DNA of 64,000 nt from Isurus oxyrinchus (taxonomy: Eukaryota), in NCBI GenBank assembly GCA_026770705.1, contig JANJGN010000009.1, positions 163,556,001-163,620,000 on the forward strand, written 5' to 3'. A model generated the notes under the pieces. The model saw nothing but the letters and a program-made list of their open reading frames with translations. It did not search any database and was not told the DNA's origin. Positions 7,658 through 58,037 of the stretch are shown here, in pieces (the first letter of the stretch is position 1; every line of letters begins with the position of its first letter). Made by a program: the position numbers and the translations under genes.

Positions 7658-7694
7658 ATGTGGATTTTGATTCTCCTCATTAGTTCTCTGCCCG
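7658..7694 (+). CDS. Gene A (activating-type CD300/pIgR-like Ig receptor) exon 1, leader MWILILLISSLP
   Basis: ATG at 7658, hydrophobic signal peptide, phase-1 donor G|GTGAGT; identical exon in copy B at 37142. Confidence 0.85.
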
Positions 7695-9549
7695 GTGAGT
7701 GACAGCCAGAGCTGGATGTTCCGATATTCTGAGTTGGTTTAACTCTCGTGCGCTGGTTATACAGGAGATGTTTAAATATTTGGAGACATGCAAAGGCACA
7801 AGAGAGGTCTTGGGCACAGTGGGTAGTGTCTCTGTATCTGAGCCAAAAGCTCTGTGTTTGAGTCCCACTTCTGTTCTTGTTGAGAATGGAAGGCGCGTTC
7901 TAACCAGGACCAACAGATTGATTATCAACCTGAAAATCTTCCAACAGACCGAAGGCTGGTGGTAAGAGGGTTTAAGATCCCAGTCCAACATGTTTGATGT
8001 GGAGTGGTGCCGCTCATTCTGTTGTCTCCGGAGGTTAGTGACCTGTTCCAGGGAAAACAAGCTTTGGAAAGCAAAAGTAAACATGTGCTTTGTCTGCCGC
8101 ATCCGTCTCTAGATGTGGGAAGTCTCCTAAGTCTAAAGGCACAGAATAGTCAGCAAAACCAAATGAGTAATAATTGTGAAGTATTTTATTACCCTGTGAA
8201 TTTACTATCACACCATGGGAATAGTTAACAAATAAACTGAACTGCATTATTAATTATGAATGATAAGTAAAGGAGAATTCAATTTTCAGAAAGCTATGCA
8301 ACATTTTGAAAATGAAAACCTTTTTTAATTGGTAATTTTCAATATAATCTGATGTCCAGTATACACTGAAGACTGCAGCGGTAATAATCCCACAAATAAA
8401 ACATGTCCCAAGTTGGCGAATATTTCTGTTTTTTAAAGTACATTTGATGAAATATTGTGTTATGAGGCTCTCTCAGTGACACTGTTCCTCACTGGTAGAT
8501 GGTTGGTCTACATCACTCTTCTCATAAGTAGCCTTTTCTTGTTCATTCTTTAACTTTAAGAAACTAGATTTTGCTCATCACTCAGTATTGCCACCTCTCC
8601 ATCATTTTCGATGAATCTATTTTATAACACACAATGTTAAACTCCCAGCCCCATCTGCTCTTAACCACCTCCCCAAAATAGTTTGTGCCTCTAGCTGATC
8701 AATTTTATGCAGAATACTTGATGTACTTATGGACAGGAAACTGAATCATGTTTCTGTCTGTTTGGCAATCTTCTTCTTTTCAATCCTTCCTCTTTCTGAT
8801 CTGATCTCTTTCCCATTCCCTTTTCATCTGTAACTTTCCCTGTATCTTTTTCCTTTTCTTCATTTCTCTCTAGCCATTTAATTATTTTCAATCCCTCTTT
8901 TGTTATTTTAGTGCAAACTCTTTCTCAACAGCATGAGTTTCTCTCCCAGCAAGGCCATTGGTCTCATGAACGTTCAAGTCAAGGCATCCAAATCCCTACC
9001 TCAGGAATCCATCCATACTGTAAGGCCACCTATCACACAACCTCGCAAACTTTCAAGACCTTCAAATCCTACCTTTGGACATCCCTAACTCATTCAAGAT
9101 CTGAACAACCCCTCCTGCAAGGACACAAACCTACCCCGCACCCCACCCACCTCAGATCAGAGCAGGGAACTGTCGGCTCCTGTGACCCCCTCCACACTGC
9201 TCCCCAGCCGACTGCAAATCAGGCCTGTCAATCAGACTGGTTTCTGGCTGTGGAACCTCCTGATGATGTCAAACGCAGTCTAGGGTGAAACCCCAAAATA
9301 TGAGGCAGAACCCCAATTTCCAGGTTCCCTCACTCTACCAGCCCCTGCCAATATGTCAAGAAAATGTCCCAATTATCTCACGAGTATATCATTGTCTGAG
9401 ACGTGCTTTGGAACAGAGTGAGGCTCTGATAAGTGTCTATATGAATGATTACTCTCATCACAAACTTGATGGAATTTAACTCATTAAAATGTATCTGTTT
9501 GAATTAAGCAGTTATTTCCTGTTCAATTCCTGAAATGTTGTCTCCTCAG

Positions 9550-9864
9550 TTTCAGGTGCATTGTGGGCAAAAGAGAGAGTAACAGGAGTTGTGGGAAGAG
9601 CGATCACAATAGAATGTCACTATGATGCGTGGAGGTACAAGTCACATATAAAATATTGGTGTCGCGGCTGGACTCGCCAGTGTAATGTTGTAGCATCGAC
9701 AAATTGGCCAAATGGAAGAATATCGATCACAGATAACAAGTCACAAGGATTATTTATTGTTACTATGGAGAATCTTCACTCAGGAGATACAGGATGGTAC
9801 AGCTGTGGTATTGAAGCAACTGGCCACGATCCAATGTTTAATGTAAAGCTACAAATATCTTACG
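9550..9864 (+). CDS. Gene A exon 2, V-set Ig domain of CD300/pIgR/TREM type
   Basis: Acceptor TCTCCTCAG; ITIECHY...KYWCRGWTRQC...DTGWYSCG gives the B-strand Cys, C-strand Trp, DxGxYxC and the extra C-C' Cys pair; 315 nt, phase 1/1. Confidence 0.92.
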
Positions 9865-10141
9865 GTACATTTCTTACGGATTTTCTTTATTACTCTCGAC
9901 TGAAATGTCTGCTCAATGTTTTATCTGGGAGGAAACATGACAGCTCCGATATCCCGAGGCTCCACAGCAATGCAGAGTCTTAAAGGTAAAGGGCAGAGGT
10001 CGGGAAATCCAACTCATGTTACCCAAACCCAATTCATGGCCTGTCCAACATGTCAGAGTTGAACTTTACAAGTGAACTAAACGGAAATTGAGAAGTTGTT
10101 TTGATGGTAAAAGAAGCCTCTTTATTAATTGTTGAGACATT

Positions 10142-12730
10142 GGGCTGGATATTCAGCCTCAAAGCGGGTAGGGGGAATTCGGAAAATTCCCCGCTCGGCC
10201 TTGGAAGAAAGTGCCCACAAAGGTGGGATTCCCATTGCTGGGAGCTGTGCCCGGGCTGCAGTCTGGCCAGCCACACCAGGAAGAAATGCAGAGGCAGCCA
10301 CAGGGGCTGCCGGCTGCGGAGACGGGCTGTTTAAAAGGCCCCTCCTTAATGCCCTTGGACTTTGTAACAGCTAAAATCAAAACACAAAGGCCCTTCACCC
10401 CTCACCCCTCACAGCCCACAAAGGGGGTGGATGTGAGGGGAAAATTTGTCATGAGGGGGCTTGGAGGTGGGTGGAAGTGTACAGCTTGAAGTCAGGAGCA
10501 TGAGGGGGTATAAGGCGTGGGTATAGGGATAGAGGGGGAACGAAGGGCCAAGCGGGTTGGATGGGGGTGTGACTTGACATAGCGGGCATGAAATGCACCT
10601 TTTGAACTTAGCTGTTAAAAGATCCCCTCATGCAGACCAGTGTTTACAGCTCCTCTGAGGGGCTTTGGATTACGACTCATTCAAAACCTGGCCCGAGTCC
10701 ATGAAAATTGCAGAGGAGTAGGACGTCACTTTGGTCTGAAGGCTGCACAAAGCACAGGGTAGAGGCCCTGGACTGAGACACCAGCCTTTATCTTGTACAG
10801 AAAGTGTTCACATGTGAGTGACATGAACATTGCTCATCAAAACAAGGAGCGATAGGCAGGGAGACATTCTTTGGAGTTTATTGACAACAATGAACAGTAT
10901 GTACAAGTGATTAACACCCGTGCCCAGGACGTGAAACTACATCTCCTCAGCCACGCGGTGTCTGGCGGCACCGTCGAGACCTTCTGTGCTCAGTGGGTGA
11001 CCACGGGGGTTGGGGTCCTTTATCCAGCCTCTTAATCACATTTTGGTTTGATGTTGTAAGTGTCCTTTAAATCATGTCTTTGGTTTTGCAGTGACCCTAA
11101 CTTAGGGGCTGCGTTTTATATGATCCCTCATTTTGTTAATTTAGTTTATTGGGTTGGCTTTAAAAGAGCTACATCTTCTCAACTTTCCTAATCCTCCCGC
11201 TACATCTTGGTGCTCTGCAGACATCCACAGTGGAGGTAAAGACAGTCTGCTGACTGCTATGCTCTGTCTGTGATAACTTTGGCGGGCGTCCTCTGGAGGC
11301 CTGAGGCCTGGAGGGCCCCGGCTTCCTTTCGAGGTCCTACTGTGTGGCATTAGCACCCTCCTTGGCCTGTGGACTTGGAGCTGTCAAGGTCACAGTAAGA
11401 GGGGAGTTACCAGGATGAATGGCCCCGGAGGGTACACATGTTGATCCTTCTCGCTATGGGTACCCAATGGCCATTGGCTGAATCCTTGAGGAGCAGGTGT
11501 AGCTGGAGTGAGATCGAGCTGCCTGCACCCCTCTCGCATACACACTGTCAGGGGCCAACTATACATCAGCAATGGAGTTCAGCCCCGCAGCAATGTAGGA
11601 ACGATGCCCTGGACCAACGTCTCCATGGCAGCTGCCATCCTACCAGTGTTGACCTCGGTGCAGTGACATGCCGGCGCTATCACCTCAGAGTGCAGGCGGA
11701 CGGACTCCTCCATTGTGCCTTGCAATCTGAGGGGTGCAGCAGATATCCCTTCCTGATGTTCCCGCGTTGGCCTTTCCAGCTCCAGCAACTGTGACATGAC
11801 CAAATCCAGAAACGCGTCACCTGACTCGACCTCAGCAAATTTATGGCCTCCAGCTGCCCACTGAGTGCTGGACACCTGGGAAGCCCCTGCCGCTGCCAGC
11901 TGTGGATCAGGCAGTGCAATTTGCTCACCAGCTGTGACCCTGAGTCTACTCTAAAGCTAGATCTCACCGAGGGGTGTGCCTCTGCGCTGGTGGAGGGTGT
12001 GGGTGAGGGCAGTGACGGTACATCAAGGAGGGTCCCTCCAGGTTCCTCTTCAGAGATTTCTTTGGGGATTACTTGGTGTCCCTGGGTCTCCATCGGCTGT
12101 TTCCCAGATGTGCATGTGGAAGCAAGTGGAAATATTTTGTGCATGGCAGTGGCCTGTGAAACAGGACACATCACTCACAGCATGGTTGTCTGATGGATGT
12201 TGCACTGCTGGACCCTCACTTGGCTGAGCACCGCCGACCTCACCGTCAGCACAGGATTGGTCCAGGCCGTTGCCGGCCAGCTGGATGGCTCTGTTTACAA
12301 AGTACTAGTACTGTTCAGGAACATGATGTTCATATTTTCATACATGTCGCTGAATTTGTCAGTCACATTTACGCCTCTATTATCAACCAAAGAGCGGGAT
12401 TGTCCCCGATTTGCGCTAAGTGCGTTAGTGGGCGGGGAAATCGATGTTTTACCCACCGGCCACAATGGGGGGTTTTCAGGTCGCATCTTCCCAAACCCAA
12501 CGCATTAGTTATGCATTCCTGGGAAACATACCATTTCCATGGTGGGTGGGATCTCATTCACCCCAAACACCATCACTTCACTGCTTCATCAGGCCCAGCA
12601 CCATATGTAAAGTCCAGCCTCGTGCACACATCTCAGTGTTTCCAACCCAGGACCACAGCAGGGAAGATATCCCCAAGAGGCAAAAAGACTGTAGCTCCCA
12701 GGTTTAGTGAGCTGTCACTGTAACACATTG
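10142..12730 (-). mobile_element. Rearranged Harbinger-like element with Myb/SANT gene remnants (intron 2, copy A)
   Basis: GGGCTGGATATT end; - strand coiled-coil exon MSQLLELERPTREHQEG homologous to 25453-25677; inverted 5' piece 12391-12730 with RGKKTVAPRFSELSL. Confidence 0.7.
10952..11168 (+). mobile_element. Tx1-clade LINE 3' fragment with ~15-bp target duplication
   Basis: Homologous to ORF2 end/3' UTR at 47030-47243; ends AAAAGAG; flanked by CTACATCTCCTCAGC (10937) and CTACATCTTCTCAAC (11169). Confidence 0.75.
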
Positions 12731-13909
12731 TGTACACTGTGGGGGCCCTGCTGTGATGTCCTCTACTCCCACTCTGGCTGCAGTATGGACAGCGCTGTGA
12801 CCAACCAGGCCTGGGAGGCGGGGGCAGCGGTGGTATACCCACTGAATGTTATTAAGTTAACCCTCACTGTCAGATAATGTAAACAGTATGAAAAGTGTGG
12901 TTGAGAAACCCTTAGAAACTGTCCTTGCTGGATGGAAACAAATGCTGGAGAGATTGGAAATTTCTAAATGAAATGAGTGGATGCCTGATTGTTTTAGAGA
13001 ATGAAATGCAGGTACAACAAATTTTTTAGGGATCTGAGGAGAGGGCTATCTTGCAATATGATAAAGTAGAGAATATTGAGATTTTTAATTCAATTTGTTT
13101 CACACTTTTTGGTCACCATATTAACTGAAAATTTTATTTAAATGAGAGAAGGTCATCATCTAATCGTTTATTAATTGTGTTTAATTTTATGCAGTGGTGG
13201 CATTAATTGGTGATTCACTTGTGCACCTATAAACAGATGCAGACTGAAACTGCGGGTGGTGGATTTGATTAGATTCACACAGTAAACAGCACTTTAAAAC
13301 AGTTCCACAAGTCTTAACCTATCTAACCTCAGAGCTAATCTGTCTCTTTTCTGTTCAGCAACGAACACTGTAGATTTAAAAAGCTATAGAAGTCCAATAA
13401 TTTTACCACACAGTGCTTTCACATTGGGGTGTCCACTGACAGAAACTGGGTCTTCAGATCTGGGCCTTGTTCACACTGTCTCCTGGGAATTCTGACCAGC
13501 TACCCTGCTGTCTTCAGGGAGATCTGGCCAACCATCCTGCTGTGTTCTGGGAGATCTAAGCAGCTACCCCCTCACATAGGCTTCAGTATTCCCTTAAATG
13601 TGTTTCTTCTCTTTCATCTCTCTTTGTCGTACCCAGTCTGTTCAGAAATGCTTTTATCCCAGGATTGATTAAATCAATCTTCACTTTAATTCTTAGACTT
13701 GTAAAAACAAACTTACCCTATCTTTATGTCACTTCATGACACCTTTTTACAACCTGCATATATCCCCCTTTGAACTAAAACAAATTAATTCAAACTATTC
13801 CTGTTATTGCTTCATGTACAAAAATGTTGAAGTTCTCTTTTGTTCATTAACATATCAAAACCACTTCTTACTGTTGACTTTTGACCCTATCCACTGATGA
13901 GGCAGTCCA

Positions 13910-14190
13910 CGTCATGGAACCATAAACTTAAATCTGGAGATAGGATCGTCAGGGATGTCAGGAAGCACTTCTTCACGCAAAGTATAGCGGAAATCAGGAA
14001 CACTCTCCTCAAAAAAGCTCTTTCGCTCAATTGAAAATTTCAAAACTGATTGACAGATTTTATCTGGTAGCAATATTCGGGTTATGGGACCCCGGTAGGT
14101 AAATGGACAGAAGATACTGGTCAGTTGGGATTTAATTGAATTGTGGAACAGGCTGAAGGGGCTGCATGTCCGAATCCCTTTTCCATGTTC
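13910..14190 (+). mobile_element. CR1 3'-end fragment
   Basis: GATGTCAGGAAGCACTTCTTCACGCAAAG and downstream 3' UTR-like sequence; copy at ~48535-48815. Confidence 0.55.
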
Positions 14191-14833
14191 TGGAGCCCCA
14201 GTTAATTTTTCAGTGGTCTGGGCCTTGTGAGTAACAATGTGCTGTGAAACAAGCTCACAAACAGTTAGCATTTCAAAGAGACACTTTCCAATCACCAGGC
14301 AAACTGTGACCTGTGTTGTTTCAGAGTACAGTTTGTGACAGTGAAAGCAGTGAAGGCCTGCCAAACCTCATTAAAAATGTTGGTGAAAGTGTCACTTTTC
14401 TCTGGCTAATCCCTTGACCAAAGAGGGAATTTTAATTCCCCTCCCCCATCCTGCATCGTGTTGAAGCATGATGGGATTTGCTGGATCCAGAACCTTCTCC
14501 AGCACAGCTTGTGATCCAGGAGACACACGAAAGCTTCACCCCCACCCCCAGGCAAATGTTTTATACAATTTCTCCCTCCCCATGATTGGCCAATCCTGCC
14601 CCAAGCAGCAAAGTCACCCTGACTCCCTCCTCGCTGCTGTGCTCCGAGGACAAATTCCCACCAATTTCTCCCATGTCCAGTTCCCAAACCCAAATTTAAC
14701 ATCCACCCCATAGAGTGGTAGATGTGTTGGTGAGATTCCAACATGGCAGAGCCTGGCTGAGATGAAGTGCAAAGTTTGAAGAGTATTTGATTATTAAATG
14801 TTCAGTATCTGAATGTTTCTTTCTTTCCAACAG

Positions 14834-15163
14834 AACCCGTGTCTGTTCCTGTGCTTAGATTTTCATCACCAGCAAATGTCTCATGTTCTGGGAGTTCAGT
14901 GTCCGTCTCCTGTGAGTCTGTCCAGGGATCCCTTCCCATTCAATACACATGGTATGAAAAGACCCTGTCTGAAGATTCAAAGATCTCTGACACCAATAAA
15001 CTGGATCTACATTGTCAATCCTTCAAACAGCAACATCATCAATATTACTGCACAGCCTTGAATAATCAGGGAGAAAAATCCAGTGACACTGTCACTGTTA
15101 ACTTAACACTCATGAATGTAACAACGAAAAGCTGCAGTTATGTGATACAAATTGGAAACATTG
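14834..15163 (+). CDS. Gene A exon 3, C2-type Ig domain
   Basis: Acceptor TTTCCAACAG, donor G|GTAAGT; PVSVPVL...VSCESVQGSLPIQYTWY...YYCTALN; 330 nt, phase 1/1. Confidence 0.9.
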
Positions 15164-15489
15164 GTAAGTGTTACTTTCTACAAACAATGTGGCGAATGAA
15201 TGTTTTAAATTCATGTCTATCCAAACTGGTCACTGTTTCAGTTCCTTCAGTCAATCTGAGAAATTGCAACTGGCCAAATTCACTCTCTCTGGTTCCTCAA
15301 ACATTCTGAACAAGGTCACTAAGTTGCATTTTTCATGAAAAATGGACAGGATCAGAAAATATCCCCAAAACATGCAAAAATATTGCAGAATCTCCAACAA
15401 ACCCATCGAATCAAAATAGCATTTGATTGACAGAGCTTTCATAAAGCAATTTGTCTATTTCCAGCAGATGGAATTGTGAAATGCAACCT

Positions 15490-15960
15490 CCAACTGTTGT
15501 GTCCTAGTTTGGGAAGGATATCACTGATAGAATAGAGAAGAATTGAATTAAAATGAACCCTTGGATGAGAGGTTTTAGTCATGAGGAAAGTATCATCACA
15601 ACTGCGGTGAAAGACCAGCTGGAGGACGTGGAAATTGTTAGAAATTTGGATAAGGTAACTCTAACTATTTCCACTAGTCAGTGAGTCAGCAACAAGAGAG
15701 CATTAACTTTAAAATTATCACTAAAAGGACAAAGGGAGAAATTTGGAGAATTTTATTGATGCAAACTGTTTTTAGGACATGGAATGCCCAACTGAAATAA
15801 GTTTACAAACAAATTTAATAATAGATTTTAAAAGGGAAACAAATGTATGAGGGTGTGGGAAAAGGACAATGAAATGGAATTAAATGACGAGATCATTCAG
15901 AGAACCAGCATTGGAGCGATGGGCTGAATTCCCTCCCCTGTGTTGTAAAAATTCCATCAT
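15490..15960 (+). mobile_element. Old CR1 3' fragment
   Basis: Degenerate ORF2 end and GATGGGCTGAAT 3' motif; copy at ~51265-51735. Confidence 0.5.
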
Positions 15961-16479
15961 TCCAGACAAAATCTCAAATTATCCTGTATAAAAAATTTAT
16001 TCGCTCCCCATAAAACAATGACCCTGGTTCTGACATAAGGAGGACTTTAGCCTATTTGAATGTAACGGTTCAATTTTCTGCAGAGTGGGTGCAGCATGTT
16101 CACCGAGAAACACCAACATGGGCACAAAACAAAGAGAATCACATTTTCCCCTGAGCAGCAGGAGACAGGAATTTACATATGCAAATATAATGACTCTGGT
16201 CATGTGGTCTCTTGCCTCAGTTGTCAGGGAAGAAGGGTGGAATTTTACACCCCCATTGCGCCAGGGACTGGGCTGTAAAATGCAGCCAGCCATTCTAAAC
16301 TCCATGCACTCCAGCAGGACCATAAAATCCCACTGTCACATGGCTCTGAGCAAAGGCTATCAGCAGCAGGTAGAAATTACCCCTGTAAACTGTGTTTGTA
16401 CTGGAGTTGTCAGCAGGGACTCAGTTGCACTCTGACCTTTGATGCCAGTCTTTTGTAGTTACAAGTTCCCCTTAAGAAT

Positions 16480-16900
16480 TAAAATTCAGGCTGATACCAC
16501 TGTCCCGCACTGAGGTAGTGCTATACTGGTGGTGGTGCTGCTGTGTAGATGAGGTGTTAAACTGAGGATCCACATCCCCCTTAGGTAGATGTAAACATTT
16601 CCAGGGTATTATTCACAGAATAGGGAAGTTCTCCTGGTGTCCTTGAAGCCTTTATTCCTCAACCAATACACACAAATTGGGAGCAGGAGCAGGCCACTTG
16701 GTCTTTTGAGCCTGTTAATGTCACTACAAAACAGATCATCTAGTGAATGTTTTACTGATGTTTGTGGGGCTTTATTGTGTAGGAATGAACTTCCACGTTT
16801 CCCAACATTAAAACTTTGGCTTTACTTCAAAAAAGTACTTCATAGGCTCTGAAGCACTTTGGAATATCCCAAGTTGTGAAAGGTGATGAATCAGCACAAC
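16480..16900 (+). mobile_element. Deu-domain SINE fragment
   Basis: CACTGAGGTAGTGCT...AGATGAGGTGTTAAACTGAGG...AGGTAGATGTAAA resembles the Deu domain; copy at ~52260-52670. Confidence 0.55.
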
Positions 16901-17486
16901 TTGTTTCTTACTTTTTGAAACAAACCATTTATTAAAATACATCTGAACCAATTATCTGAGTGCAAACTGCAGGGGGGGGAGGGGGAGGGAGGAGCCAGTC
17001 CCAGCAGCAAGGTGGTCATTATAATTAAATGGTCAGAAAATCACTGGCAGGTTTGAGACATTCATGGTCAGTGGGTGAAGATTCTCATCTTTACTGCAAG
17101 CTCAGAAAACTGCCCCCAAAGTGCAGGAAGTGACCATTGCCAGTATTAGGATGTGACTGTTTAATGTGTTCACATGAAATTCATGTCAAGAATGTGTATC
17201 TCTGGATTGCAGTCCACCAACTTGAGCCCTTACCATGCCCACTTCTAACTCTGTCCCACCAACTCTCAGATATAGGAAAGAAAGTGGAATTACCAGTAAA
17301 GATAGATCACCATCAGGTATCAGCAACCTCTCCACTTGTGACCAGAGAGGGGTAAATTACACAGAAATCAATTCTACCAGCCAGGCTTTTCCTCAATTAA
17401 TGAGGTTCCATTTGACAATGATGCTCTCTCAGTTGACTACAAGTGAAAATGAGGTGAATCTGAATGTTATTCCCTTGTGTCAACAG

Positions 17487-17604
17487 GACCTGAGTATTGT
17501 TGTGAAGCTTGTACAAGAGTATCACCAACTACATATTTGACAAGTACAGATATAATTTCCACTACCAATCGAGCCACAACTTCAGATCCCGAAAATGCTG
17601 AAAG
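17487..17604 (+). CDS. Gene A exon 4, Ser/Thr-rich stalk (GPEYCCEACTRVSPTTYLTSTDIISTTNRATTSDPENAE)
   Basis: CAACAG acceptor, AG|GTACAA donor, phase 1 in and phase 2 out; same length (118 nt) and frame in copy B. Confidence 0.8.
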
Positions 17605-18415
17605 GTACAATGTTCTCATGGATTGGCATTGCTTCCATATGTGAGAGATACAATTGGCCAAAGGAGTGAAAGTTGTTCATTAATTGTAAAGTAGCTCATC
17701 AGAATGGAAATGGTGGCTGGGTTTATATCATGCTGTTGTGTTAGCTTCTTAATGAGGCTGCATTTTTCTGTTGGAAAATACAAGCAAGGAGTGAGCTTTT
17801 CCATTGTGTTGCCGCTCAGATGGTGTTTTTTGCCTTATTCACCTTGATTACTTCACCGCTAAGGTAACCTCACAGTGTGTGAGGAGTTGTACTTGTCAAA
17901 CTTACCTTGCTGCTGTCTACACTGACAGAGTGGTTGTATTTGGGCTGATGAAAAGGAAGAATTAGCGTGATATATCTGCACATCCCTTGGTTTCACTAAT
18001 GAGAGACATCTTGCAACTCTGGTCCCGTTTCCATATGATTAGCCTGAGCTGTCGACAATAAGTAGCAGAAATTGTAGTCCGATGTAAACACTCAGGAATC
18101 GGGTCTTTGAAGTTACAATGGTGATAAAGACAAAACGCCAACTAAATGTCAAACAGAAAGAGGGACAGTTGGAAATGGGCAGCAGGTATGTCCGCAGCTG
18201 TGGAGAAAATAAACACGTTCATGGTTTGGGTGCAGACACTTCTTCAGAATTCTAGTCCACACACGAAGCGAAGCAGGTCCACTCACCCCACAGATCCCAA
18301 CTGAGCTGCTGAATGTTTCCAGAATCTTCTGTTTTCCATTCATATTTCTAGCACATGCAGTGCACTTACTTTTATGCAGATTATTGTCAATGATTTAAAA
18401 AGTATTGAAAGTCTA

Positions 18416-18948: not shown

Positions 18949-19039
18949 TTACATTATCTGGGATGTGATACGCTGGGTGCTCTTTACTCTCCTGGTGATT
19001 TGTGCTGTTTCAGGCACATGGTGTACGAGAAAATCTAAG
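18949..19039 (+). CDS. Gene A exon 5, transmembrane segment with Asp/Arg (SYIIWDVIRWVLFTLLVICAVSGTWCTRKSK)
   Basis: Polypyrimidine acceptor TTCTTCTCTTTTGCTCAG; phase 2 matches the stalk exon; hydrophobic run followed by RKSK; donor GTGAGA. Confidence 0.8.
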
Positions 19040-22817: not shown

Positions 22818-22859
22818 TTCCAGACACTCAACGGATCAGATCCTCAGAGCTTGACCTAA
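22818..22859 (+). CDS. Candidate gene A last coding exon, short tail FQTLNGSDPQSLT*
   Basis: TTTTCAG acceptor in apparently non-repetitive DNA, phase 0 fits exon 5, AATAAA at 22967; no independent support. Confidence 0.3.
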   Translation, partial: FQTLNGSDPQSLT

Positions 22860-30406: not shown

Positions 30407-30459
30407 ATTCTGAATGTTTTGTCTGGAGTCAATTACAAGCAGCGTAGACAATGTCTGTG

Positions 30460-31723: not shown

Positions 31724-31770
<47 letters not shown>

Positions 31771-39356: not shown

Positions 39357-40255
39357 GTATATTTCTTACTGATTTTCTTTATTATTCTCAACTGAAATGT
39401 CTGCTCAATGTTTTATCTGGGAGGAAACATGACAGCTCCGATATCCCGAGGCTCCACAGCAATGCAGAGACTTAAAGGTAAAGGGCAGAGGTCGGGAAAT
39501 CCAACTCATGTTACCCAAACCCAATTCATGGCCTGTCAAACATGTCAGAGTTGAACTTTACAAGTGAACTAAACGGAAATTGAGAAGTTGTTTTGATGGT
39601 AAAAGAAGCCTCTTTATTAATTGTTGAGACATTGGGCTGGATATTCAGCCTCAAAGCGGGTAGGGGCAATTCGGAAAATTCCCCGCTCGGCCTTGGAAGA
39701 AAGTGCCCACAAAGGTGGGATTTCCATTGCTGGGAGCTGTGCCCAGGCTGCAGTCTGGCCAGCCACACCAGGAAGAAATGCAGAGGCAGCCACAGGGACT
39801 GCCGGCTGCGGAGACGGGCTGTTTCAAAGGCCCCTCCTTAATGCCCTTGGACTTTGTAACAGCTAAACTCAAAACACAAAGGCCCTTCACCCCTCACCCC
39901 CCACAGCCCACAAAGAGGGTGGGTATAAGGGGAAAATTTGTCATGAGAGTTCTTGGAGGTGGGTGGAAGTGTACAGCTTGAAGTCAGGAGCATGATGGAT
40001 TATAAGGCGTGGGTAAAGGGACATAGGGGGCATTAACGGCCAAACGTGATGGATGAGGATGTGACTTGACATAGGGGGCATGAGATGGACCTTTTGAACT
40101 TAGCTCTTAAAAGGTCCCCTCATGCAAACCAGTGTTTACAGCTCCTCTGAGGGGCTTTGGACTACGACTCATTCAAAACCTGGCCCGAGTCCATGAAAAT
40201 TGCAGAGGAGTAGGACGTGTCCATCTCCACAATGGAGGCAGCCAGGTTGGAGAGT

Positions 40256-45689: not shown

Positions 45690-46071
45690 CCAGGTTGGGG
45701 AGTTCTGGGTGTGGGTTTTGAAGGAGCCAGCCTGGATCCTTTAAAGCTGCTCCCAAAATCACACAACCCTGGAAAGCAGTTGGGAATCCCAGAATTAGGA
45801 CACACCCGCCATTTTTAAAGGGCTCCTGAATCAACCCAAGTTGGTGAAATCCAGGCGGTCACTTTGGTCTGAAGGCTGCACAAAGCACAGGGTAGAGGCC
45901 CTGGACTGAGACACCTGCCTTTATCTTGTACAGAAAGTGTTCACATGTGAGTGACATGAACATTGCTCATCAAAACAAGGAGCGATAGGCAGGGAGACAT
46001 TCTTTGGAGTTTATTGACAATAATGAACAGTATGTACAAGTGATTAACACCCGTGCCCAGGACGTGCAACT

Positions 46072-46209
46072 GGCCTAAATAGCCAAGTGGTTATGGTACT
46101 GGGTTTGTAACCCCAAGATCAGGAATTCAAATCTCACAATGGCAAAATATGAAACAATGTAACTTGATCTGAATAGGAACAGATGGAAATGTGTTTGTAC
46201 TCAAAAGAG
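46072..46209 (+). mobile_element. tRNA-derived SINE-like insertion ending AAAAGAG
   Basis: A-box TAGCCAAGTGG, anticodon-like GGG-TTTGTAA-CCC, B-box-like GAATTCAAATC; absent from copy A. Confidence 0.65.
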
Positions 46210-46224
46210 TTACATTTCCTCAAC

Positions 46225-47455
46225 TCTCGAGGCCTTCCGTGCTCAGTGGGGACTGGGGTGCTTTATTGACCCCTTTTAGCACTTTTTGGTTTAAAGTTGT
46301 AAGTTTCCTTTAAACTTCGTTCTTGGTTTTACAGCTGACCTAAATTAGGGGCTGTCCCTTATTTATCCTAATTTTGTAAATTTAGTTTAATTGTTTTGAC
46401 TCTATAAGAGTTACATCTCCTCAACCCCCGTAATATGAGCCGCCTCGGGGACATGTTCTCTGTGCCATTTGGCACAGCAAAGAGGAGCTTTTTGTACGGA
46501 CTGCTGCTGCACATCTTCCATTTTCTCGCCCTTGTCCGCCGCCTGGATATGCCCTGGCATGCCTTGTTGCCTTCCGGCAGCGGAGGCCCCCGATGGGAGG
46601 CCCTCTGAGGAGGTGTCCTCCCCCTTTCTATCGGGGACCTGGGTTCGAGGGTGTTGCATGCAGCAGTCCCCTATAATAGGAGAATTCATAGGTTCACGGA
46701 CTCCCAAGACACATGCCCTTTTCGTGGTCTTGTGGAGTCCGTGGACCATGCATACATAGGGTGTGGTAGGTTGCACTCCCTTTTCAGTTACTTAATGAAC
46801 CTTTTGTTAATGTTTTGTTTGCACTTCAGCCCCACGCTCCTGATCTATGGACACCCGGTGCGGAAGGGGGTCGGAAAGGAGGAGGACCTCCTCGTGAACC
46901 TGCTCCTGGGCCTGGCCAAGTTGGCCATTAACAGGTCCAGGCAGCAGGCGATCGAAGGGGGAGTCCCGCCCAATTATTTATCCCTCTTCCGCGGCTACGG
47001 TCGCAGCCGGATGTCCCTGGAAAGGGAGCATGCGGTGTCTGCCGGCACTCTCGAACCCTTCCGTGCTCGGTGGGCACCGCGGGGACTGGGGTGTTTTGTT
47101 GACCTCTTTTATCACATTTTGGTTTAAAGTTGTAAGTTTCCTTCAAACTTTGTTCTTGGTTTTACAGCTGACCTGAATTAGGGGCTGTGCCTGATTTATC
47201 CCAATTTTGTTAATTTAGTTTAATTGCTTTGACTCTATAAGAGTTACATCTCCTCAACTCTCGAGACCTTCTGTGCTCGATGGGTGACCACGGGGGTTGG
47301 GGTGCTTTATCCAGCCTCTTAATCACATTTTGGTTTGATGTTGTAAGTTTCCTTTAAATCCTGTCTTTGGTTTTGCAGTGACCCTAACTTAGGGGCTGCG
47401 TTTTATTTTGTTCCTCATTTTGTTAATTTAGTTTATTTGTTTGGCTTTAAAAGAG
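46225..47455 (+). mobile_element. Three stacked Tx1-clade LINE 3' fragments (46225-46410, 46426-47243, 47259-47455)
   Basis: ORF2 C-terminus IGDLG.RVLHAAVP...CPF..LVESVDHAYIGC...LLLGLAKLAI; each fragment ends AAGAG and is followed by a copy of the 15-bp target. Confidence 0.85.
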
Positions 47456-49000
47456 CTACATCTTCTCAACTTTCCTAATCCTCCCGCTACATCTTGGTGC
47501 TCCGCAGACATCCAGAGTGGAAGTAAAGACAGTCTGCTGACTGCTATGCTCTGTCTGTGATAACTTTGGCGGGCGTCCTCTGGAGGCCTGAGGCCTGGAG
47601 GGCCCCGGCTTCCTTTCGAGGTCCTGCTGTGTGGCATTACCACCCTCCTTGGCCTGTGGACCTGGAGCTGTCAAGGTCACAGTAAGAGGGGAGTTACCAG
47701 GATGAATGGCCCCGGAGGGTACACATGTTGATCCTTCTCGCTATTGGCTGAATTAGCGAGCAGCAGGGGTAGCTGAAGTGAGATTGAGCTGCCCGCACCC
47801 CTCTCTCATACACACTGTCAGGGGCCAACTATACATCAGCAATGGAGTTCAGCCCCACAGCAGTGTAGGAACGGTGCCCTGGACCAACATCTCCAAGGCA
47901 CCTACGATCCTACCAGTGTTGACCTTGGTGCATTGACATGCCAGCGCTATCACCTCAGAGTGCAGGTGGATGGATTCCTCCATATTAACTGAAAATTTTA
48001 TTTAAAAAGAGAGAAGGTCACCATCTAATCCTTTATTAACTGTGTTTAATTGTATGCAGTGGTAGCATTAAACAGATGTCTTCAGGTCTGGGCCTTGTAC
48101 ACACTGTCTCCTGGGAGTTCTGACCAGCTACCCTGCTGTCTTCAGGGAGATCTGGCCAACCATCCTGCTGTGTTCTGGGAGATCTAAGCAGCTACCCCCT
48201 CACATAGGCTTCAGTATTCCCTTAAATGTGTTTCTTCTCTTTCATCTCTCTTTGTTGCAACCAGTCTGAAAAGAAATGCTTTTCTTCAAAGGATTGATTA
48301 AATCAATCTTTACCTCTTAGACTTGTAAAAACAAACTTACTCTATGTTTATGTCACGTCCTTACACCTTTTTACAACCTGCATATATCTCCCTTTGAACT
48401 AAAACAACACAATTCAAACTATTTCTGTTATTGCTTCATGTACAAGTCTGTTGTAGTTCTTTTTTGTTTATTAACATATCAAAACCACTTCAAATTGTTG
48501 ACTTTTGACTCTATCCACTGATGAGGCAGTCCATGTCATGGAACCATAACCTTAAATCTGGAGATAGGCTCGTCAGGGATGTCAGGAATCACTTCTTCAC
48601 GCAAAGTATAGCGGAAATCAGGAACACTCTCCTCAAAAAAGCTCTTGAACTTAAATGAAAATTTCAAAACTGATTGACAGATTTTATCTGGTAGCAATAT
48701 TCGGGTTATGGGACCCCGGTAGGTAAATGGACAGAAGATACTGGTCAGTTGGGATTTAATTGAATTGTGGAACAGGCTGAAGGGGCTGCATGTCCGAATC
48801 CCTTTTCCATGTTCTGGAGCCCCAGTTAATTTTTCAGTGGTCTGGGCCTTGTGAGTAACAATGTGCTGTGAAACAAGCTCACAAACAGTTAGCATTTCAA
48901 AGAGACACTTTCCAATCACCAGGCAAACTGTGACCTGTGTTGTTTCAGAGTACAGTTTGTGACAGTGAAAGCAGTGAAGGCCTGCCAAACCTCATTAAAA

Positions 49001-49141
49001 TCAAGTTCTGTCGAAGGGTCATGAGGACTCGAAACGTCAACTCTTTTCTTCTCCATCGATGCTGCCAGACCTGCTGAGTTTTTCCAGGTAATTCTGTTTT
49101 TGTTTTGGATTTCCAGCATCCGCAGTTTTCTTTGTTTTTAT
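49001..49141 (+). mobile_element. Penelope terminal fragment with TSD CTCATTAAAA (copy-B-specific)
   Basis: TSD at 48991 and 49142; single site in copy A at ~14367. Confidence 0.85.
49004..49042 (+). ncRNA. Minimal type-I hammerhead ribozyme-like motif (variant core)
   Basis: AGTT-CTGTCGA-A-GGGTC-ATGAG-GACTC-GAAA-CG-TC-AACT: stem I, stem II, GAAA, GUC site; position 6 is U instead of canonical A. Confidence 0.55.
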
Positions 49142-50610
49142 CTCATTAAAATGTTGGTGAAATTGTCACTTTTCTCTGGCTAATCCCTTGACCAAAGAGG
49201 GAATTTTAATTCCCCTCCCCCATCCTGCATCGTGTTGAGGCATGATGGGATTTGCTGGATCCAGAACCTTCTCCAGCACGGCTTGTGATCCAGGAGACAC
49301 ACGAAAGCTTCACCCCCACCCCCAGGCAAATGTTTTATACAATTTCTCCCTCCCCATGATTGGCCAATCCTGCCCCAAGCAGCAAAGTCACCCTGACTCC
49401 CTCCTCGCTGTTGTGCTCCGAGGCAACATTCCCACCAATTTCCAAACTTTTACCATAACGTTCCTACTTGGAAACCAGCCAAACATTCAATCAGTCTGCA
49501 AGAATTCTGGTGAGATTTTGCTGTTAAATTCGGCACAAACTCAACATTCCTGGTATTTCCAGCTTTCTCACCACCCCACGCACAGTCCCCCCTCTCGTCT
49601 CCACGTACCAGGGTTGAAGTGTTCTATCGCAGCATGCAGAGAACCAGAGCCAATCACATTTACATTCTTATCCAAAGCTACAAAACATGTAACCGATATC
49701 TGACAACATTTTGCCCTCATTTTACCCTTTGCTTTTCTAAGATTCTCTCCAACCAATTCACATTCAACTCACAAACAATGAAACAGCATTGGAGGCTCAC
49801 TACCAGCTACGAAGAGATATTGTTCACCATGATATTCATGTTAACATACTCTCAGTATCATAGCTGCTGTTCTGATCTGGAGACCTGATATGTTCTGATA
49901 TAATGGCTGAAAGGGTAACTCAGGCCTCTAAGAGGATGGAGAGATATGGGGATGGATTTTTAAAAAGTATGGTGTCAGGATTAGAGATGGGTGGGTGTGA
50001 AATTTGACACCGCTGGTCTCCATGCCAATTTACTGTTACAATCCCAAGCCCGAAACATTTAGAAAGCAGGCAGCTTGCAGTCAAGTGGTGGGCAGCTAAC
50101 TTAGGAAATAACATTTACCAAAGGGGCCAATTAAAGACCCATTCCTGCGACCACTGGGATTTCATTCAGCAATGCAAGCAGACCACATTACCCCTTCAGG
50201 ATCATGGCCCGGCAGCTGCTGGGTTTTGAAACATAAAATAAACTTACCTGGACTTTCCCCTTGCTGTCTCCATGCTCAGGTCAGCAACTCCCACCTCACC
50301 TGGTGAGGCCCTCTAGCATCAGGAGCCCGCCCTCTGTCCCTGATTGGATGGTGAGCCAGTTCCAGTCTTTTGATTGGCAAGAACATTGAAAATTGCAGTG
50401 GGCATGCCTAAAGAATGGTGAATGGTGTCAGGACCTGAAACTATCTCCCATGTCCAGTTCCCAAACCCAAATTTAACATCCACCCCATAGAGTGGTAGAT
50501 GTGTTGGTGAGATTCCAACATGGCAGAGCCTGGCTGAGATGAAGTGCAAAGTTTGAAGAGTATTTGATTATTAAATGTTCAGTATCTGAATGTTTCTTTC
50601 TTTCCAACAG

Positions 50611-50940
50611 AACCCGTGTCTGTTCCTGTGCTTAGATTTTCATCACCAGCAAATGTCTCATGTTCTGGGGGTTCAGTGTCCGTCTCCTGTGAGTCTGTCC
50701 AGGGATCCCTTCCCATTCAGTACACATGGTATGAAAAGAACCTGTCTGAAGATTCAAAGATCTCTGACACCAATAAACTGGATCTACATTGTCAATCCTT
50801 CAAACAGCAACATCATCAATATTACTGCACAGCCTCAAATAATCAGGGAGTAAAATCCAGTGACACTGTCACTGTTAACTCAACACTCATGAATGTAACA
50901 ACGAAAAGCTACAGTTATGTGATACAAATTGGAAACATTG
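50611..50940 (+). CDS. Gene B exon 3, C2-type Ig domain
   Basis: TTTCCAACAG acceptor, G|GTAAGT donor, 330 nt; paralog of 14834-15163. Confidence 0.9.
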
Positions 50941-53249
50941 GTAAGTGTTACTTTCTACAAACAACGTGGCGAATGAATGTTTAAAATTCATGTCTATCCA
51001 AACTGGTCACTGTTTCAGTTCCTTCAGTTTATCTGAGAAATTGCAGCTGGCCAAATTCACTCTCTCTGGTTCCTCAAACATTCTGAACAAGGTCACTAAG
51101 TTGCATTTTTCATGAAAAATGGACAGGATCAGAAAATATCCCCAAAACATGCAAAAATATTGCAGAATCTCCAATAAACCCATCGAATCAAAATAGCATT
51201 TGATTGACAGAGCTTTCATAAAGCAATTTGTCTATTTCCAGCAGATGGAATTGTGAAATGCAACCTCCAACTGTTGTGTCCTAGTTTGGGAAGGATATCA
51301 CTGATAGAATAGAGAAGAATTGAATTAAAATGAACCCTTGGACGAGAGGTTTTAGTCATGAGGAAAGTATCATCACAACTGAGGTGAATGACCAGCTGGA
51401 GGACGTGGAAATTGTTAGAAATTTGGATAAGATAACTCTAACTATTTCCACTAGTCAGTGAGTCAGCAACAAGAGAGCATTAACTTTAAAATTATCACTA
51501 AAAGGACAAAGGGAGAAATTTGGAGAATTTTATTGATGCAAACTGTTTTTAGGACATGGAATGCCCAACTGAAAGAAGTTTACAAACAAATTTAATAATA
51601 GATTTTAAAAGGGAAACAAATGTATGAGGGTGTGGGAAAAGGACAATGAAATGGAATTAAATGAGGAGATCATTCAGAGAACCAGCATTGGAGCGATGGG
51701 CTGAATTCCCTCCCCTGTGTTGTAAAAATTCCATCATTCCAGACAAAATCTCAACTTATCCTGTCTAAAAAATTAACTATTCCCTCCCCATAAAACAATG
51801 ACCCTGGTTCTGAAACAAGGAGGACTTTAGCCTATTTGAATGTAGCGGTTCAATTTTCTGCAGAGTGGGTGCAGCATGTTCACCGAGAAACACCAACATG
51901 GGCACAAAACAAAGAGAATCACATTTTCACCTGAGCAGCAGGAGACAGGAATTTACATATGCAAATATATTGACTCTGGTCATGTGGTCTCTTGCCTCAG
52001 TTGTCAGGGAAGAAGGGTGGAATTTTACACCCCCATTGCGCCAGGGACTGGGCTGTAAAATGCAGCCAGCCATTCTAAACTCCATGCACTCCAGCAGGAC
52101 CATAAAATCCCACTGTCACAAGGCTCTGAGCAAAGGCTGTCAGCAGCAGGTAGAAATTACACCTGTAAACTGTGTTTGTACTGGAGTTGTCAGCAGGGAC
52201 TCAGTTGCACTCTGACCTTTGATGCCAGTCTTTTGTAGTTACAAGTTCCCCTTAAGAGTTAAAATTCGGGCTGATACCATGATCCAGCACTGAGGTAGTG
52301 CTATACTGGTGGTGGTGCTGCTGTGTAGATGAGGTATTAAACTGAGGATCCACGTCCCCGTTAGGTAGATGTAAACATTTCCAGGGTATTTTTCACAGAA
52401 TAGGGAAGTTCTCCTGGTGTCCTTGAAGCCTTTATTCCTCAACCAATACACACAAATTGGGAGCAGGAGCAGGCTATTTGGTCTTTTGAGCCTGTTAATG
52501 TCACTACAAAACAGATCATCTAGTGAATGTTTTACTGATGTTTGTGGGGCTTTGCTGTGTACGAATTAACTTCCACGTTTCTTGATATTAAAACTGTGGC
52601 TTTACTTCAAAAAAGTACTTCATAGGCTCTGAAGCACTTTGGGATATCCCAAGGTTGTGAAAGGTGATGAATCAACACACATTGTTTCTTACTTTTTGAA
52701 ACAAATGATTTATTAAAATACATCTGAACCAATTATCTGAGTGCAAACGGCAGGGGGGAGGGGGAGGGAGGAGCCAGTCCCAGCAGCAAGGTGGGTCATT
52801 ATAATTAAATGGACAGAAAATCACTGGCAGGTTTGAGACATTCATGGTCTGTTGGTGAAGATTCTCATCTTTACTGCAAGCTCAGAAAACTGCCCCCAAA
52901 GTGCAGAAAGTGACCATTGCCAGTATTAGGATGTGACTGTTTAATGTGTTCACATGAAATTCATGTAATGAAAGTGTATCTCTGGATTGTAGTCCACCAA
53001 CCTGAGCCCTTAACTGGCCCACCAACTCTCAGATATAGTAAAGAAAGTGGAATTACCAGTAAAGATAGATCACCACCAAGTATCTGCGACCACTCCACTT
53101 GTGACCAGAGAGGGGTAAATAACACAGAAATCAATTCTACCAGCCAGGCTTTTCCTCAATTAATGAGGTTCCATTTGACAATGATGCTCTCTCAGTTGAC
53201 TACAAGTGAAAATGAGCTGAATCTGAGTGTTATTCTTTTGCTTCCACAG

Positions 53250-53367
53250 GACCTGAGTATTTTTGTGATGTTTCTACAACAGTATCACCAACTACACATT
53301 CGACAAGTACAGATATAATTTCCACTACCAATCGATCCACACCTTCAGATCCCGAAAATGCTGAAAG
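53250..53367 (+). CDS. Gene B exon 4, Ser/Thr-rich stalk (GPEYFCDVSTTVSPTTHSTSTDIISTTNRSTPSDPENAE)
   Basis: Acceptor CTTTTGCTTCCACAG, donor AG|GTACAA, 118 nt, phase 1/2. Confidence 0.85.
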
Positions 53368-54357
53368 GTACAATGTTCTCATGGACTGGCACTGCTTCCA
53401 TATGTGAGAGATACGATTGGCCAAAGGAGTGAAAGTTGTTCATTAATTTGGAAAGTAGCTCATCAGAATGGAAATGGTGGCTGGGTTTATATCATGCTGT
53501 TGTGTTAGCTTCTTAATGAGGGTGCATTTTTCTGTTGGAAAATACAAGCAAGGAGTGAGCTTTTCCATTGTGTTGCCGCTCAGATGGTGTTTTTTGCCTT
53601 ATTCACCTTGATTACTTCACCGCTAAGGTAATCTCACAGTGTGTGAGGAGTTGTACTTGTCAAACTTACCTTGCTGCTGTCTACACTGACAGAGTACTTG
53701 TATTTGGGCTGATGAAAAGGAAGAATTAGCGTGATATATCTGCACATCCTTTGGTTTCACTAATGAGAGACATCTTGTAGCTCTCGGCCCGTTTCCATAT
53801 TATAAACCTAAGCTGTTGACAATAAGTAGCAGAAATTGTAGTCCGATGTAAACACTCAGGAATCGGGTCTTTGAAGTTACAATGGTGATAAAGACAAAAC
53901 GCCAACTAAATGTCAAACAGAAAGAGGGACAGTTGGAAATGGACAGCAGGTATGTCCGCAGCTGTGGAGAAAATAAACACGTTCATGGTTTGGGTGCAGA
54001 CACTTCTTCAGAATTCTAGTCCACACACGAAGTGAAACAGGTCCACTCACCCCACAGATCCCAACTGAGCTGCTGAATGTTTCCAGAATCTTCTGTTTTC
54101 CATTCATATTTCTAGCACATGCAGTGCACTTACTTTTATCCAGATTATTGTCAATGATTTAAGAAGTATAGAAAGTATCTGATTTTTATTTTAAGACAAA
54201 TCTCTATGTCTGCTCTGTTGTATAAAGTTGACAACAAAGATCATCTGAATATGAAATCCATATATGTATGAAACAGTTATTACTTCCACTTTTTTCAGGG
54301 AACATCAGGTATTCTTGCATTTGGATTTTAATAATTAAAACTGACTCAGTATTAAAC

Positions 54358-57042: not shown

Positions 57043-57095
57043 GTACAAACTGCATTCCAAGTCAGCGGAGAGACAAGACTCTCCATTATAATCAG
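57043..57095 (+). CDS. Gene B exon 6, cytoplasmic linker (GTNCIPSQRRDKTLHYNQ)
   Basis: TTTTTCAG acceptor, CAG|GTAAG donor; phase 1 in and phase 0 out bridges exons 5 and 7 exactly. Confidence 0.8.
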
Positions 57096-57164
57096 GTAAG
57101 GATATAAACATTACTTCTCTGAATACTGTTTGGAAATTTGCAAGCTGGTGGATATAGAATTTAC

Positions 57165-57595
57165 TAAGAACTTACAGCCATTCGGCCCATCTGCACGAGG
57201 CTGGTTTTTATGCTCCACATGAACCTCCTCTCACCCCTCTTCATCCCACCCTATCAGCATATCCTTCTGTCCTTTACTCTCTCATGTGCTTATCTAGCTT
57301 TCCTTTAAATGCAGCAATCCTATTGGACTCAACTCCTCCCCAGGGAAGGAATAAGGAATTCAGAAGAAACTTCTTTACCCAGAGAGTGTCAGAATCTGAA
57401 ATTCGTTACTTTAAGTCAAAGTTCAGGCAAAAACCATAAATAAAGCTGGATAAAGCTGGATAAGCAGTTGAGGGAGAAAGTAATAGAAAGATATTTTGAA
57501 GAGGTTGGATGAAGAGGGGTGGGAGGAGGCTTGTGAGGAGAATGATACTGGTATAGACCCATTGGGCTGAATTGTTTGTTCCTGTGCTGTAAATA
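57165..57595. mobile_element. CR1 3' fragments in inverted arrangement
   Basis: GCCATTCGGCCCATC (- strand end) joined to AGAAGAAACTTCTTTACCCAGAGAGT (+ strand ORF2 end). Confidence 0.6.
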
Positions 57596-57725
57596 ATTTT
57601 TAATATCTTGTAATCCTTTATAAACTGATTTATAATAATGGATATATAGCTTTCTCCTCATAACAGCACAAGTCACCATTCAGGCTAATCAAAAATAAAT
57701 GCAATCATTTTTTTAATATATTTAG

Positions 57726-58037
57726 GAATTGGCAGCAGAGGAAGAGGGCACTGTGTATGCAAATGTAAACCACACTCAAAGGAGCTCGGCAGGAACACAC
57801 AGAGAGGGAACTGCCGAGTTGAATAATGAGGAAATCACATATGCAGCAGTGCAATTACAAAAGAAATCGTCTACACAGAGAGGTGAAGGGACAAGTCACT
57901 CAGTTAACAACCCGGACAGTGTCATCTACAGTGGAGTCATGATTCACAACCAGCCCACAAAGAAAAACCCTAAAACTCCATTACATGATACTCCCCAGGA
58001 ATCTGAAATGGCAATTTATGCTACCGTTACTCATTAG
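57726..58037 (+). CDS. Gene B exon 7, cytoplasmic tail with TVYANV, ITYAAV, VIYSGV, AIYATV (ITSM/ITIM motifs), stop TAG
   Basis: TTTAG acceptor phase 0; ORF 57729-58037; the seven exons sum to 1254 nt = 417 aa + stop. Confidence 0.9.
   Translation, partial: ELAAEEEGTVYANVNHTQRSSAGTHREGTAELNNEEITYAAVQLQKKSSTQRGEGTSHSVNNPDSVIYSGVMIHNQPTKKNPKTPLHDTPQESEMAIYATVTH

Follow-up and report, generated by a model that had tools for sequence, protein, structure and literature searches.

Two neighbouring modular domain immune-type receptor genes of Isurus oxyrinchus with closely similar ectodomains and different signalling ends

Two receptor genes in tandem

The window analysed here is a 64,000-nucleotide (nt) stretch of the Isurus oxyrinchus genome (assembly GCA_026770705.1, contig JANJGN010000009.1, positions 163,556,001-163,620,000 of the forward strand). 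It holds two adjoining immunoglobulin (Ig) receptor genes, here called A and B, whose similarity to skate proteins places them in the modular domain immune-type receptor (MDIR) family and which probably form a matched activating/inhibitory pair. Homology searches were run exon by exon, and spliced models were used solely for reading-frame checks. An earlier note on this DNA had described two tandem genes with first four exons of 37, 315, 330 and 118 nt, in which a common ectodomain of leader, V domain, C2 domain and stalk is joined to different signalling ends. Coordinates and lengths hold in both copies (Table 1), with AG/GT borders throughout, and the common ectodomain is borne out by the exon models and by the map of the duplication. 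After the stalk, gene A leads into a transmembrane (TM) segment with an arginine near its outer end, whereas gene B leads into an uncharged TM segment and a tail with tyrosine motifs. Adjoining genes, closely similar ectodomains and differing TM and cytoplasmic modules are what defines paired receptors.

Table 1. Features of the window. Positions count from its first nucleotide; predicted features are marked as such.
Feature	Position	Strand	Remarks
Gene A exon 1, start codon and leader	7658..7694	+	37 nt, ends in phase 1; ATG, GT donor; identical to gene B exon 1
Gene A exon 2, V-set Ig domain of CD300/pIgR type	9550..9864	+	315 nt; Pfam V-set, E 1.9e-10
Gene A exon 3, C2-type Ig domain	14834..15163	+	330 nt; Pfam Ig_2/Ig_3, slightly under cut-offs; RNA contigs
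Gene A exon 4, Ser/Thr-rich stalk	17487..17604	+	118 nt, ends in phase 2; RNA contigs, 0 mismatches, spliced on both sides
Gene A exon 5, TM segment with Asp and Arg near outer end	18949..19039	+	91 nt; YIIWDVIRWVLF...TRKSK; RNA joint
Gene A terminal exon, predicted	22824..22990	+	TLNGSDPQSLT, then stop; coding sequence to 22859; AATAAA at 22967
Gene B exon 1, leader	37142..37178	+	37 nt; 100% identical to gene A exon 1
Gene B exon 2, V domain	39042..39356	+	315 nt; 88.8% nt and 77% amino acid identity to gene A
Gene B exon 3, C2 domain	50611..50940	+	330 nt; 97.7% nt identity to gene A
Gene B exon 4, stalk	53250..53367	+	118 nt; 9 nt differences from gene A, all non-synonymous
Gene B exon 5, uncharged TM segment	54865..54953	+	LIYIVLGVLGGILVVFAVSLLLYLRQINK; 89 nt, ends in phase 1
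Gene B exon 6, cytoplasmic, predicted	57043..57095	+	53 nt; G-TNCIPSQRRDKTLHYNQ; AG/GT borders, phase 1 in, phase 0 out
Gene B exon 7, tail, then stop	57726..58037	+	TVYANV, ITYAAV, VIYSGV, AIYATV
Duplication unit, copy A	1..18412		from 27-bp minisatellite (1-1285) to intron 4
Duplication unit, copy B	28411..54176		from 27-bp minisatellite (28411-29470) to intron 4; repeat insertions including 40218-45858
Assembly gap	30846..31219		intergenic, at the edge of a CA-rich repeat (31220-31831)
Interspersed repeat	30298-30615, 40258-40454, 42691-42892, 44617-44808, 48998-49148, 58856-59019, 62240-62427	both	both orientations

Structure and transcripts of gene A

Exons 1-5 of gene A can be read through without a stop and encode, in this order, the leader, the V and C2 domains, the Ser/Thr-rich stalk and SYIIWDVIRWVLFTLLVICAVSGTWCTRKSK. 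The TM motif is WDVIRW, and its arginine stands at position 7 of a hydrophobic stretch of ~24 residues. RNA-type contigs from three runs (two samples, two studies) were aligned to positions 14750-20700. Their joints, 15162>17486 (cut +1) and 17602>18947 (cut +2), are both of the GT..AG type and match the predicted junctions 15163|17487 and 17604|18949 exactly; the second junction, which is the in-phase splice to the arginine-bearing TM exon claimed earlier, was found in three runs. Contig depth lies on the exons and is zero in unique intron sequence. Over exon 4 the contigs show 0 mismatches to gene A, where the gene B exon would give 9, while some contigs over exon 3 bear letters of gene B or of other paralogues or alleles, one of them carrying 5 of the 6 B-specific letters in its covered range. 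The contigs prove that an A-type stalk exon is spliced to the arginine-bearing TM exon.

Two of the contigs run exactly 167 nt past position 19039 into sequence absent from 14750-20700. The donor at 19039 is consequently used and gene A continues beyond its TM exon, a point on which the earlier description is incomplete. A relaxed scan asked for an acceptor, a short open reading frame (ORF) and a stop codon in succession and scored the candidates by their likeness to the short tails found in activating homologues. The only tail-like candidate with a pyrimidine-rich acceptor lies at position 22824, where a phase-0 AG acceptor after TTTTCAGTTCCAG opens a tail like the xLN(E/D)SD tails of these homologues. 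An end 167 nt from this acceptor would fall 18 nt after an AATAAA signal, which fits a poly(A) end. We therefore predict the last exon of gene A at 22824. A candidate at 30610 scored higher and was set aside for its weak acceptor and greater length, and a homology scan at stringent score with the tails of other species gave no convincing last exon of gene A. Between 19040 and the assembly gap no exon encoding a tail with an immunoreceptor tyrosine-based inhibitory motif (ITIM) or activation motif (ITAM) was found, in line with the earlier observation of no tyrosine-motif exon between the TM segment of gene A and copy B. With the predicted last exon, the gene A model comprises 6 exons and ~308 amino acids (aa), ending in a tyrosine-free tail of ~17 residues.

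Structure of gene B

The TM exon of gene B ends in phase 1 and the tail ORF starts in phase 0, which puts a direct join of the two out of frame. The uncharged TM segment and the tail described in the earlier note stand, whereas their direct junction does not, a 53-nt exon having been missed. Inhibitory homologues carry ~18 extra residues between TM segment and tail, and a scan of the intron with those peptides led to 57043-57095, which restores the frame. On this homology gene B would comprise seven exons and encode 417 aa, with a neutral TM segment and a tail of ~125 residues. The one hint of gene B in the RNA contigs is the contig over exon 3 with the B-specific letters mentioned above. In the tail, ITYAAV and VIYSGV match the ITIM consensus (I/V/L/S)xYxx(I/V/L), and TVYANV fits the consensus TxYxx(V/I) of the immunoreceptor tyrosine-based switch motif (ITSM). 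AIYATV is ITIM-like and fails the rule for position -2. Where the earlier note counted one ITSM-like and three ITIM-like motifs, the tail has one ITSM, two canonical ITIMs and one ITIM-like motif.

The V domain of gene B has an extra cysteine beside that of the C strand (39150-39155, YWCCGW, compared with YWCRGW in gene A). A cysteine in this column occurs in no homologue of a 24-protein alignment.

Extent of the duplication and the gap between the copies

Self-comparison of the window showed that A 2281-18412 is colinear with B 31748-54176 at ~96% nt identity over at least 16 kb. A more sensitive comparison extended the match upstream (A 815-2097 to B 28982-30302, and A 2136-2259 to B 30703-30826), and both copies open in the same 27-bp minisatellite. 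The duplication ends in intron 4, beyond which the 3' ends of the two copies are unrelated; the TM exons lie 537 nt (gene A) and 689 nt (gene B) past this end. At the protein level, the C2 domains are 94.5% identical, as compared with 77% for the V domains.

The only assembly gap of the window (30846-31219) overlaps no exon and leaves the reading frames unaffected. It is situated 11.8 kb past the TM exon of gene A and 5.9 kb ahead of the ATG of gene B. Its left flank, 30703-30826, matches A 2136-2259; on its right side comes a CA-rich repeat and then, from 31748 onward, sequence matching A from 2281. In copy A the counterparts of both flanks lie 22 nt apart and are likewise followed by a CA-rich run. 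The two sides of the gap thus follow each other in the same order and orientation as in copy A, which has no gap. An expanded CA-rich repeat is the most likely site of the gap, and the matching flanks support continuity across it, short of proof.

Family membership and fold

The best matches of the V exon among the sequences of the PDB are pIgR domains (E 4e-40 summed over domains) and CD300LF. In the alignment, the two additional cysteines of the exon fall on the C-C' pair of the first domain (D1) of pIgR, which upholds the earlier assignment to the CD300/pIgR type. An AlphaFold model of the gene A V domain (predicted local distance difference test score, pLDDT, 92.8) has its best fold match in CD300LF, with a TM-score of 0.91-0.93, a root-mean-square deviation of 1.3-1.5 Å and 35-37% identity, followed by pIgR D1, CD300A, TREM2 and NKp44. 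On the C2 exon, the Pfam families Ig_2 and Ig_3 score slightly under their cut-offs for gene A and above them for gene B.

A search with the V exon against 1.8 billion representative sequences returned 772 proteins at E ≤ 1e-10. The closest are from sharks and rays and bear automatic names (pIgR-like, CMRF35-like molecule 8, Fc receptor-like, CXADR-like, A33-like); more than 15 shark and ray species have RefSeq models of the family under 'pIgR-like' or 'CMRF35-like'. A search for homologous proteins returned 70+ shark and ray models. The name 'pIgR-like' on these homologues is an automatic label. The closest protein is a great white shark model, 81-84% identical. Among the matches are also 'Modular domain immune-type receptor 2' and '5' of the clearnose skate, to which exon-wise blastp gives 52-63% identity for the V domain and 60-74% for the C2 domain (E 1e-40 to 1e-53); the TM segment of gene B is 70% identical to that of skate MDIR2 and that of gene A 47% identical to that of MDIR5. 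The BLASTP comparison and phylogeny that had been proposed as a check thus yielded similarity to MDIR2 and MDIR5 and a tree that clusters by lineage (see below), and the link to skate MDIRs suggested before turns out, on sequence similarity, to be actual family membership.

Both ectodomains join a CD300/pIgR/TREM-like domain to a domain of the C2/I type, as judged by Pfam and fold, and the family includes forms with a positively charged TM segment as well as forms with ITIMs. According to PMC3031540, which cites Cannon et al. 2006, MDIRs form multigene families with activating and inhibitory members and are kin to CD300, TREM, FCAR and pIgR. By their sequences, genes A and B are members of the elasmobranch MDIR family. 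The MDIR family was reportedly described in skates by Cannon et al. in 2006, in Immunogenetics 58:362. A literature search for shark CD300/MDIR paired receptors found no paper on them in the collection searched.

Age of the signalling modules

The motif W-x-V-x-R-W was found in 28 fetched shark and ray proteins and never together with a TM segment of the gene B type. These proteins come from Scyliorhinus, Heptranchias, Hemiscyllium, Chiloscyllium, Mobula, Hypanus, Hemitrygon, Amblyraja and Rhinoraja and include skate MDIR5; in the clean models the tails measure 4-20 residues and hold no ITIM or ITAM. When the arginine position of the pattern was left free, arginine was still present in 36/36 matches, while the position occupied by aspartate in gene A varied (K in 13, D in 7, S in 5, and otherwise T, A, N, M, E or G). 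The arginine is consequently the conserved feature and the aspartate is not, so that of the Asp/Arg signature described in the earlier note only the arginine stands.

Among the homologues from sharks and rays we counted 28 of the arginine-TM type and 15 of the ITIM type. The TM exon of gene A is 87% identical to the corresponding part of the Scyliorhinus canicula protein XP_038676045, the V domain of which is 58% identical. For gene B, identity reaches 90% between the TM segment and that of an S. canicula protein, and 53-61% between the tail and those of homologues in Heptranchias, Heterodontus and Scyliorhinus; inhibitory homologues carry 1-3 ITIM/ITSM motifs at matching places.

In a V-domain tree (68 rows, 106 columns, quick search), sharks and rays separated with 99% support. 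Activating and inhibitory labels are interspersed on this tree, requiring 18 changes against a mean of 20 for shuffled labels, and the V domains group by lineage, an activating and an inhibitory member of Heptranchias pairing at 99% support. Activating/inhibitory pairs with 75-93% identical V domains occur in several species. In Chiloscyllium punctatum an activating and an inhibitory family member have consecutive locus tags (chiPu_0012807 and chiPu_0012808); adjacency in other sharks was judged from consecutive locus tags and common contigs only.

The conserved TM and tail modules, together with the interspersed V tree, indicate that the signalling modules are old. By these sequence comparisons, both modules are ancient and orthologous across sharks and rays, while similarity of the ectodomains is renewed within lineages, and the young part of the locus is the copied 5' half only. 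The description of the locus as a young paired-receptor system consequently fails for the signalling modules and applies solely to the recent duplication that bears the ectodomain.

Divergence of the V exon

Differences between the copies are unevenly distributed: they affect 11.6% of the columns in the V exon, 7.6% in the stalk exon, 4.0% in non-exon sequence and 2.4% in the C2 exon, the V exon having thus diverged ~3x more than the introns. The V exon shows 28 non-synonymous and 3 synonymous changes, giving a rate of non-synonymous change (dN) of 0.125, a rate of synonymous change (dS) of 0.047, which equals that of the introns, and a dN/dS of 2.66. In the stalk exon there are 9 non-synonymous changes and 0 synonymous ones. 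The V differences cluster in the C' strand and C'-C'' loop and in the F-G loop and G strand, with one indel in the B-C loop. With 31 changes, dN/dS is not significantly greater than 1 when taken alone, and the enrichment of differences in loops over strands is not significant (16/51 vs 8/53, p = 0.06).

A and B differ in 25 V columns; in these, the homologue from the great white shark agrees with A at 9, with B at 10 and with neither at 6, and these states come in blocks. The presence of both A and B states in that species implies that many of the variants predate the species split. The V exon looks, on these alignments, like a mosaic built by exchange among paralogues, possibly with selection for change in addition. 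That the excess arose instead by point-mutational positive selection after the duplication, as in an arms race with pathogens, would account for the dN/dS of 2.66 and for a dN ~3x the neutral rate beside a dS at the level of the introns; the blocks of alternating A and B states in the great white shark, pointing to variants that are older than the species split and were shuffled, make it unlikely as the sole cause, and both processes may have acted together. Given the divergence and mosaic structure of the V exon, ligand binding by the two receptors has probably ceased to be identical.

A matched pair and its alternatives

As a whole, the window is best explained as two adjacent MDIR members that form a matched activating/inhibitory pair, a reading to which we assign a probability of about 80%. 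Both products would carry a signal peptide, a CD300/pIgR-type V domain with a C-C' disulfide, a C2 domain and a Ser/Thr-rich stalk. A TM arginine in the outer third of the segment pairs with the TM aspartate of FcRgamma or CD3zeta dimers in FcalphaRI, LILRA, NKp46 and GPVI. By analogy, gene A would most likely activate, its arginine-bearing TM segment pairing inside the membrane with an adaptor that carries an ITAM and an acidic TM residue (of the FcRgamma/CD3zeta type, or DAP12). Phosphorylated ITIMs and ITSMs recruit SHP-1/2, SHIP or SAP-type adaptors, and gene B would most likely dampen signalling through the recruitment of SH2 phosphatases to its tail. Upon binding related ligands, the two receptors would then act in opposite directions. 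On this reading, the 5' part of the unit, from the upstream region through intron 4, was copied recently by unequal crossing-over or conversion, with its breakpoint in intron 4.

Several points weigh against this reading. The RNA contigs cover exons 3-5 of gene A only, they stem from other individuals, and their exon 3 variants are those of other alleles or paralogues, so that the expressed gene may be a near-identical family member and not this exact copy. Moreover, the runs were labelled 'RNA?' by guess, although the GT..AG joints at which they are spliced and the lack of depth in introns are signs of RNA. The splicing of gene B is predicted from homology, and the last exon of gene A from a weak tail similarity and a coincidence of length.

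The copies might also be two haplotypes, or parts of a mis-joined scaffold, placed in tandem across the gap and not neighbouring genes at all. A gap does lie between them and their identity reaches 96% over more than 16 kb; yet they differ in their whole 3' ends, each of which is orthologous to a distinct module conserved elsewhere, 12 kb of unique sequence separates gene A from the gap, the flanks of the gap are colinear with the ungapped copy A, and in Chiloscyllium punctatum an activating and an inhibitory member carry consecutive locus tags. We regard this explanation as highly improbable. A little more room is left for a gene A that is not coupled to an adaptor, in which the arginine would serve anchoring, oligomerisation or a non-ITAM partner, or in which the product would be a tail-less decoy competing with gene B for ligand. 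The arginine stands near the membrane edge, where snorkelling is possible, and the residue next to it is variable and often lysine. Its invariance in the shark and ray proteins and the resemblance to the FcRgamma/CD3zeta-coupling receptors named above speak against this, as does the conservation of the TM exon far above that of the ectodomain, the pattern expected of an intramembrane protein-protein contact, and such an uncoupled gene A seems improbable to us.

A broader view of MDIR clusters can be entertained at slightly less than even odds: they may work as a cassette system in which two ancient, highly conserved signalling modules (an arginine-TM segment with a short tail, and a neutral TM segment with an ITIM/ITSM tail) are repeatedly recombined with the current ectodomain through breakpoints in the intron ahead of the TM exon, while V patches are shuffled among paralogues. 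If so, each lineage would regenerate matched activating and inhibitory receptors for new ligands, and this would constitute a germline diversification of innate receptors predating the split of sharks and rays.

Comparison with known receptor systems

The locus does not represent a new kind of system, the family being known from skates and having shark members in RefSeq under automatic names. Skate MDIRs share the V-C2 unit and likewise form multigene families with activating and inhibitory members; skate MDIR5 has the same TM motif, as W-K-V-G-R-W, and skate MDIR2 the same neutral TM segment and ITIM tail. Compared with the skate cDNAs, the shark locus is genomic: it resolves the exon structure, the tandem arrangement of an activating-type and an inhibitory-type gene with 96% identity across their common 5' half, and the intron 4 breakpoint.

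Mammalian CD300 molecules resemble genes A and B in V fold, extra C-C' disulfide and possession of inhibitory (ITIM) and activating (charged TM) members. They differ in consisting of a single V domain with no further Ig domain, whereas a C2 exon follows the V exon in both shark genes, an architecture that departs from that of the CD300 family. Activating CD300 members have a TM lysine or glutamate and are not known to use an outer-third arginine. With pIgR the genes share the double-disulfide V domain, its domains being the best PDB sequence matches, but pIgR strings together 2-5 V-like domains, lacks a C2 domain and ends in a long tail for transcytosis, in contrast to the one V and one C2 domain found here and to tails that are either ~17 aa long or ITIM-bearing.

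Like KIR, LILR/PIR, SIRP, Siglec and PILR receptors, genes A and B are neighbours with near-identical ectodomains, opposite signalling ends and fast-evolving ligand-binding domains, and in those systems too the ectodomains are kept alike by unequal crossing-over or conversion. The Ig domain families of the shark genes are unrelated to those of the mammalian paired receptors, which makes the locus an independent instance in cartilaginous fish. As a genomic example of a matched activating/inhibitory pair in a shark it is well resolved and has partial support from RNA, and it suggests that the MDIR family of cartilaginous fish follows the paired-receptor logic of mammalian KIR, LILR, SIRP and CD300. 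It also provides constructs for asking which adaptor is recruited by an outer-third TM arginine in the oldest jawed vertebrates.

Repeats and other features of the window

The minisatellite at the left edge of each duplication unit has the consensus GGAGGCTGAGGTGGAGGCAGTGACTGA in up to 27.6 copies and gives rise to long spurious ORFs on both strands, such as a Ser/Thr/Ala-rich one of 453 aa on the minus strand at 28407-29768. No tRNA or Rfam family was found in the window. An interspersed repeat of ~100-190 nt occurs in both orientations in at least 7 places with 82-96% identity and is probably a short interspersed nuclear element (SINE) or resembles a miniature inverted-repeat transposable element (MITE).

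On the 3' side of the gene A TM exon, 24817-26172 is 76-84% identical to 10726-12296 in intron 2 of gene A and could be the relic of an older duplication or a common repeat; no remnant of an Ig exon was found beside it. Intron 2 of gene B holds an insertion of ~5.6 kb relative to gene A (40218-45858) with retroelement ORFs on the minus strand, arranged as two partial copies in tandem (41534-42505 and 43161-44282), in which the Pfam reverse-transcriptase match (E 7e-6) stays below threshold. The ORF at 40812-41312, considered as a GIY-YIG-like candidate, has no Pfam match. Within the upstream region common to both copies, 33684-35861 of copy B contains ORF fragments resembling a long interspersed nuclear element (LINE), with a weak endonuclease-reverse transcriptase match (E 0.008).

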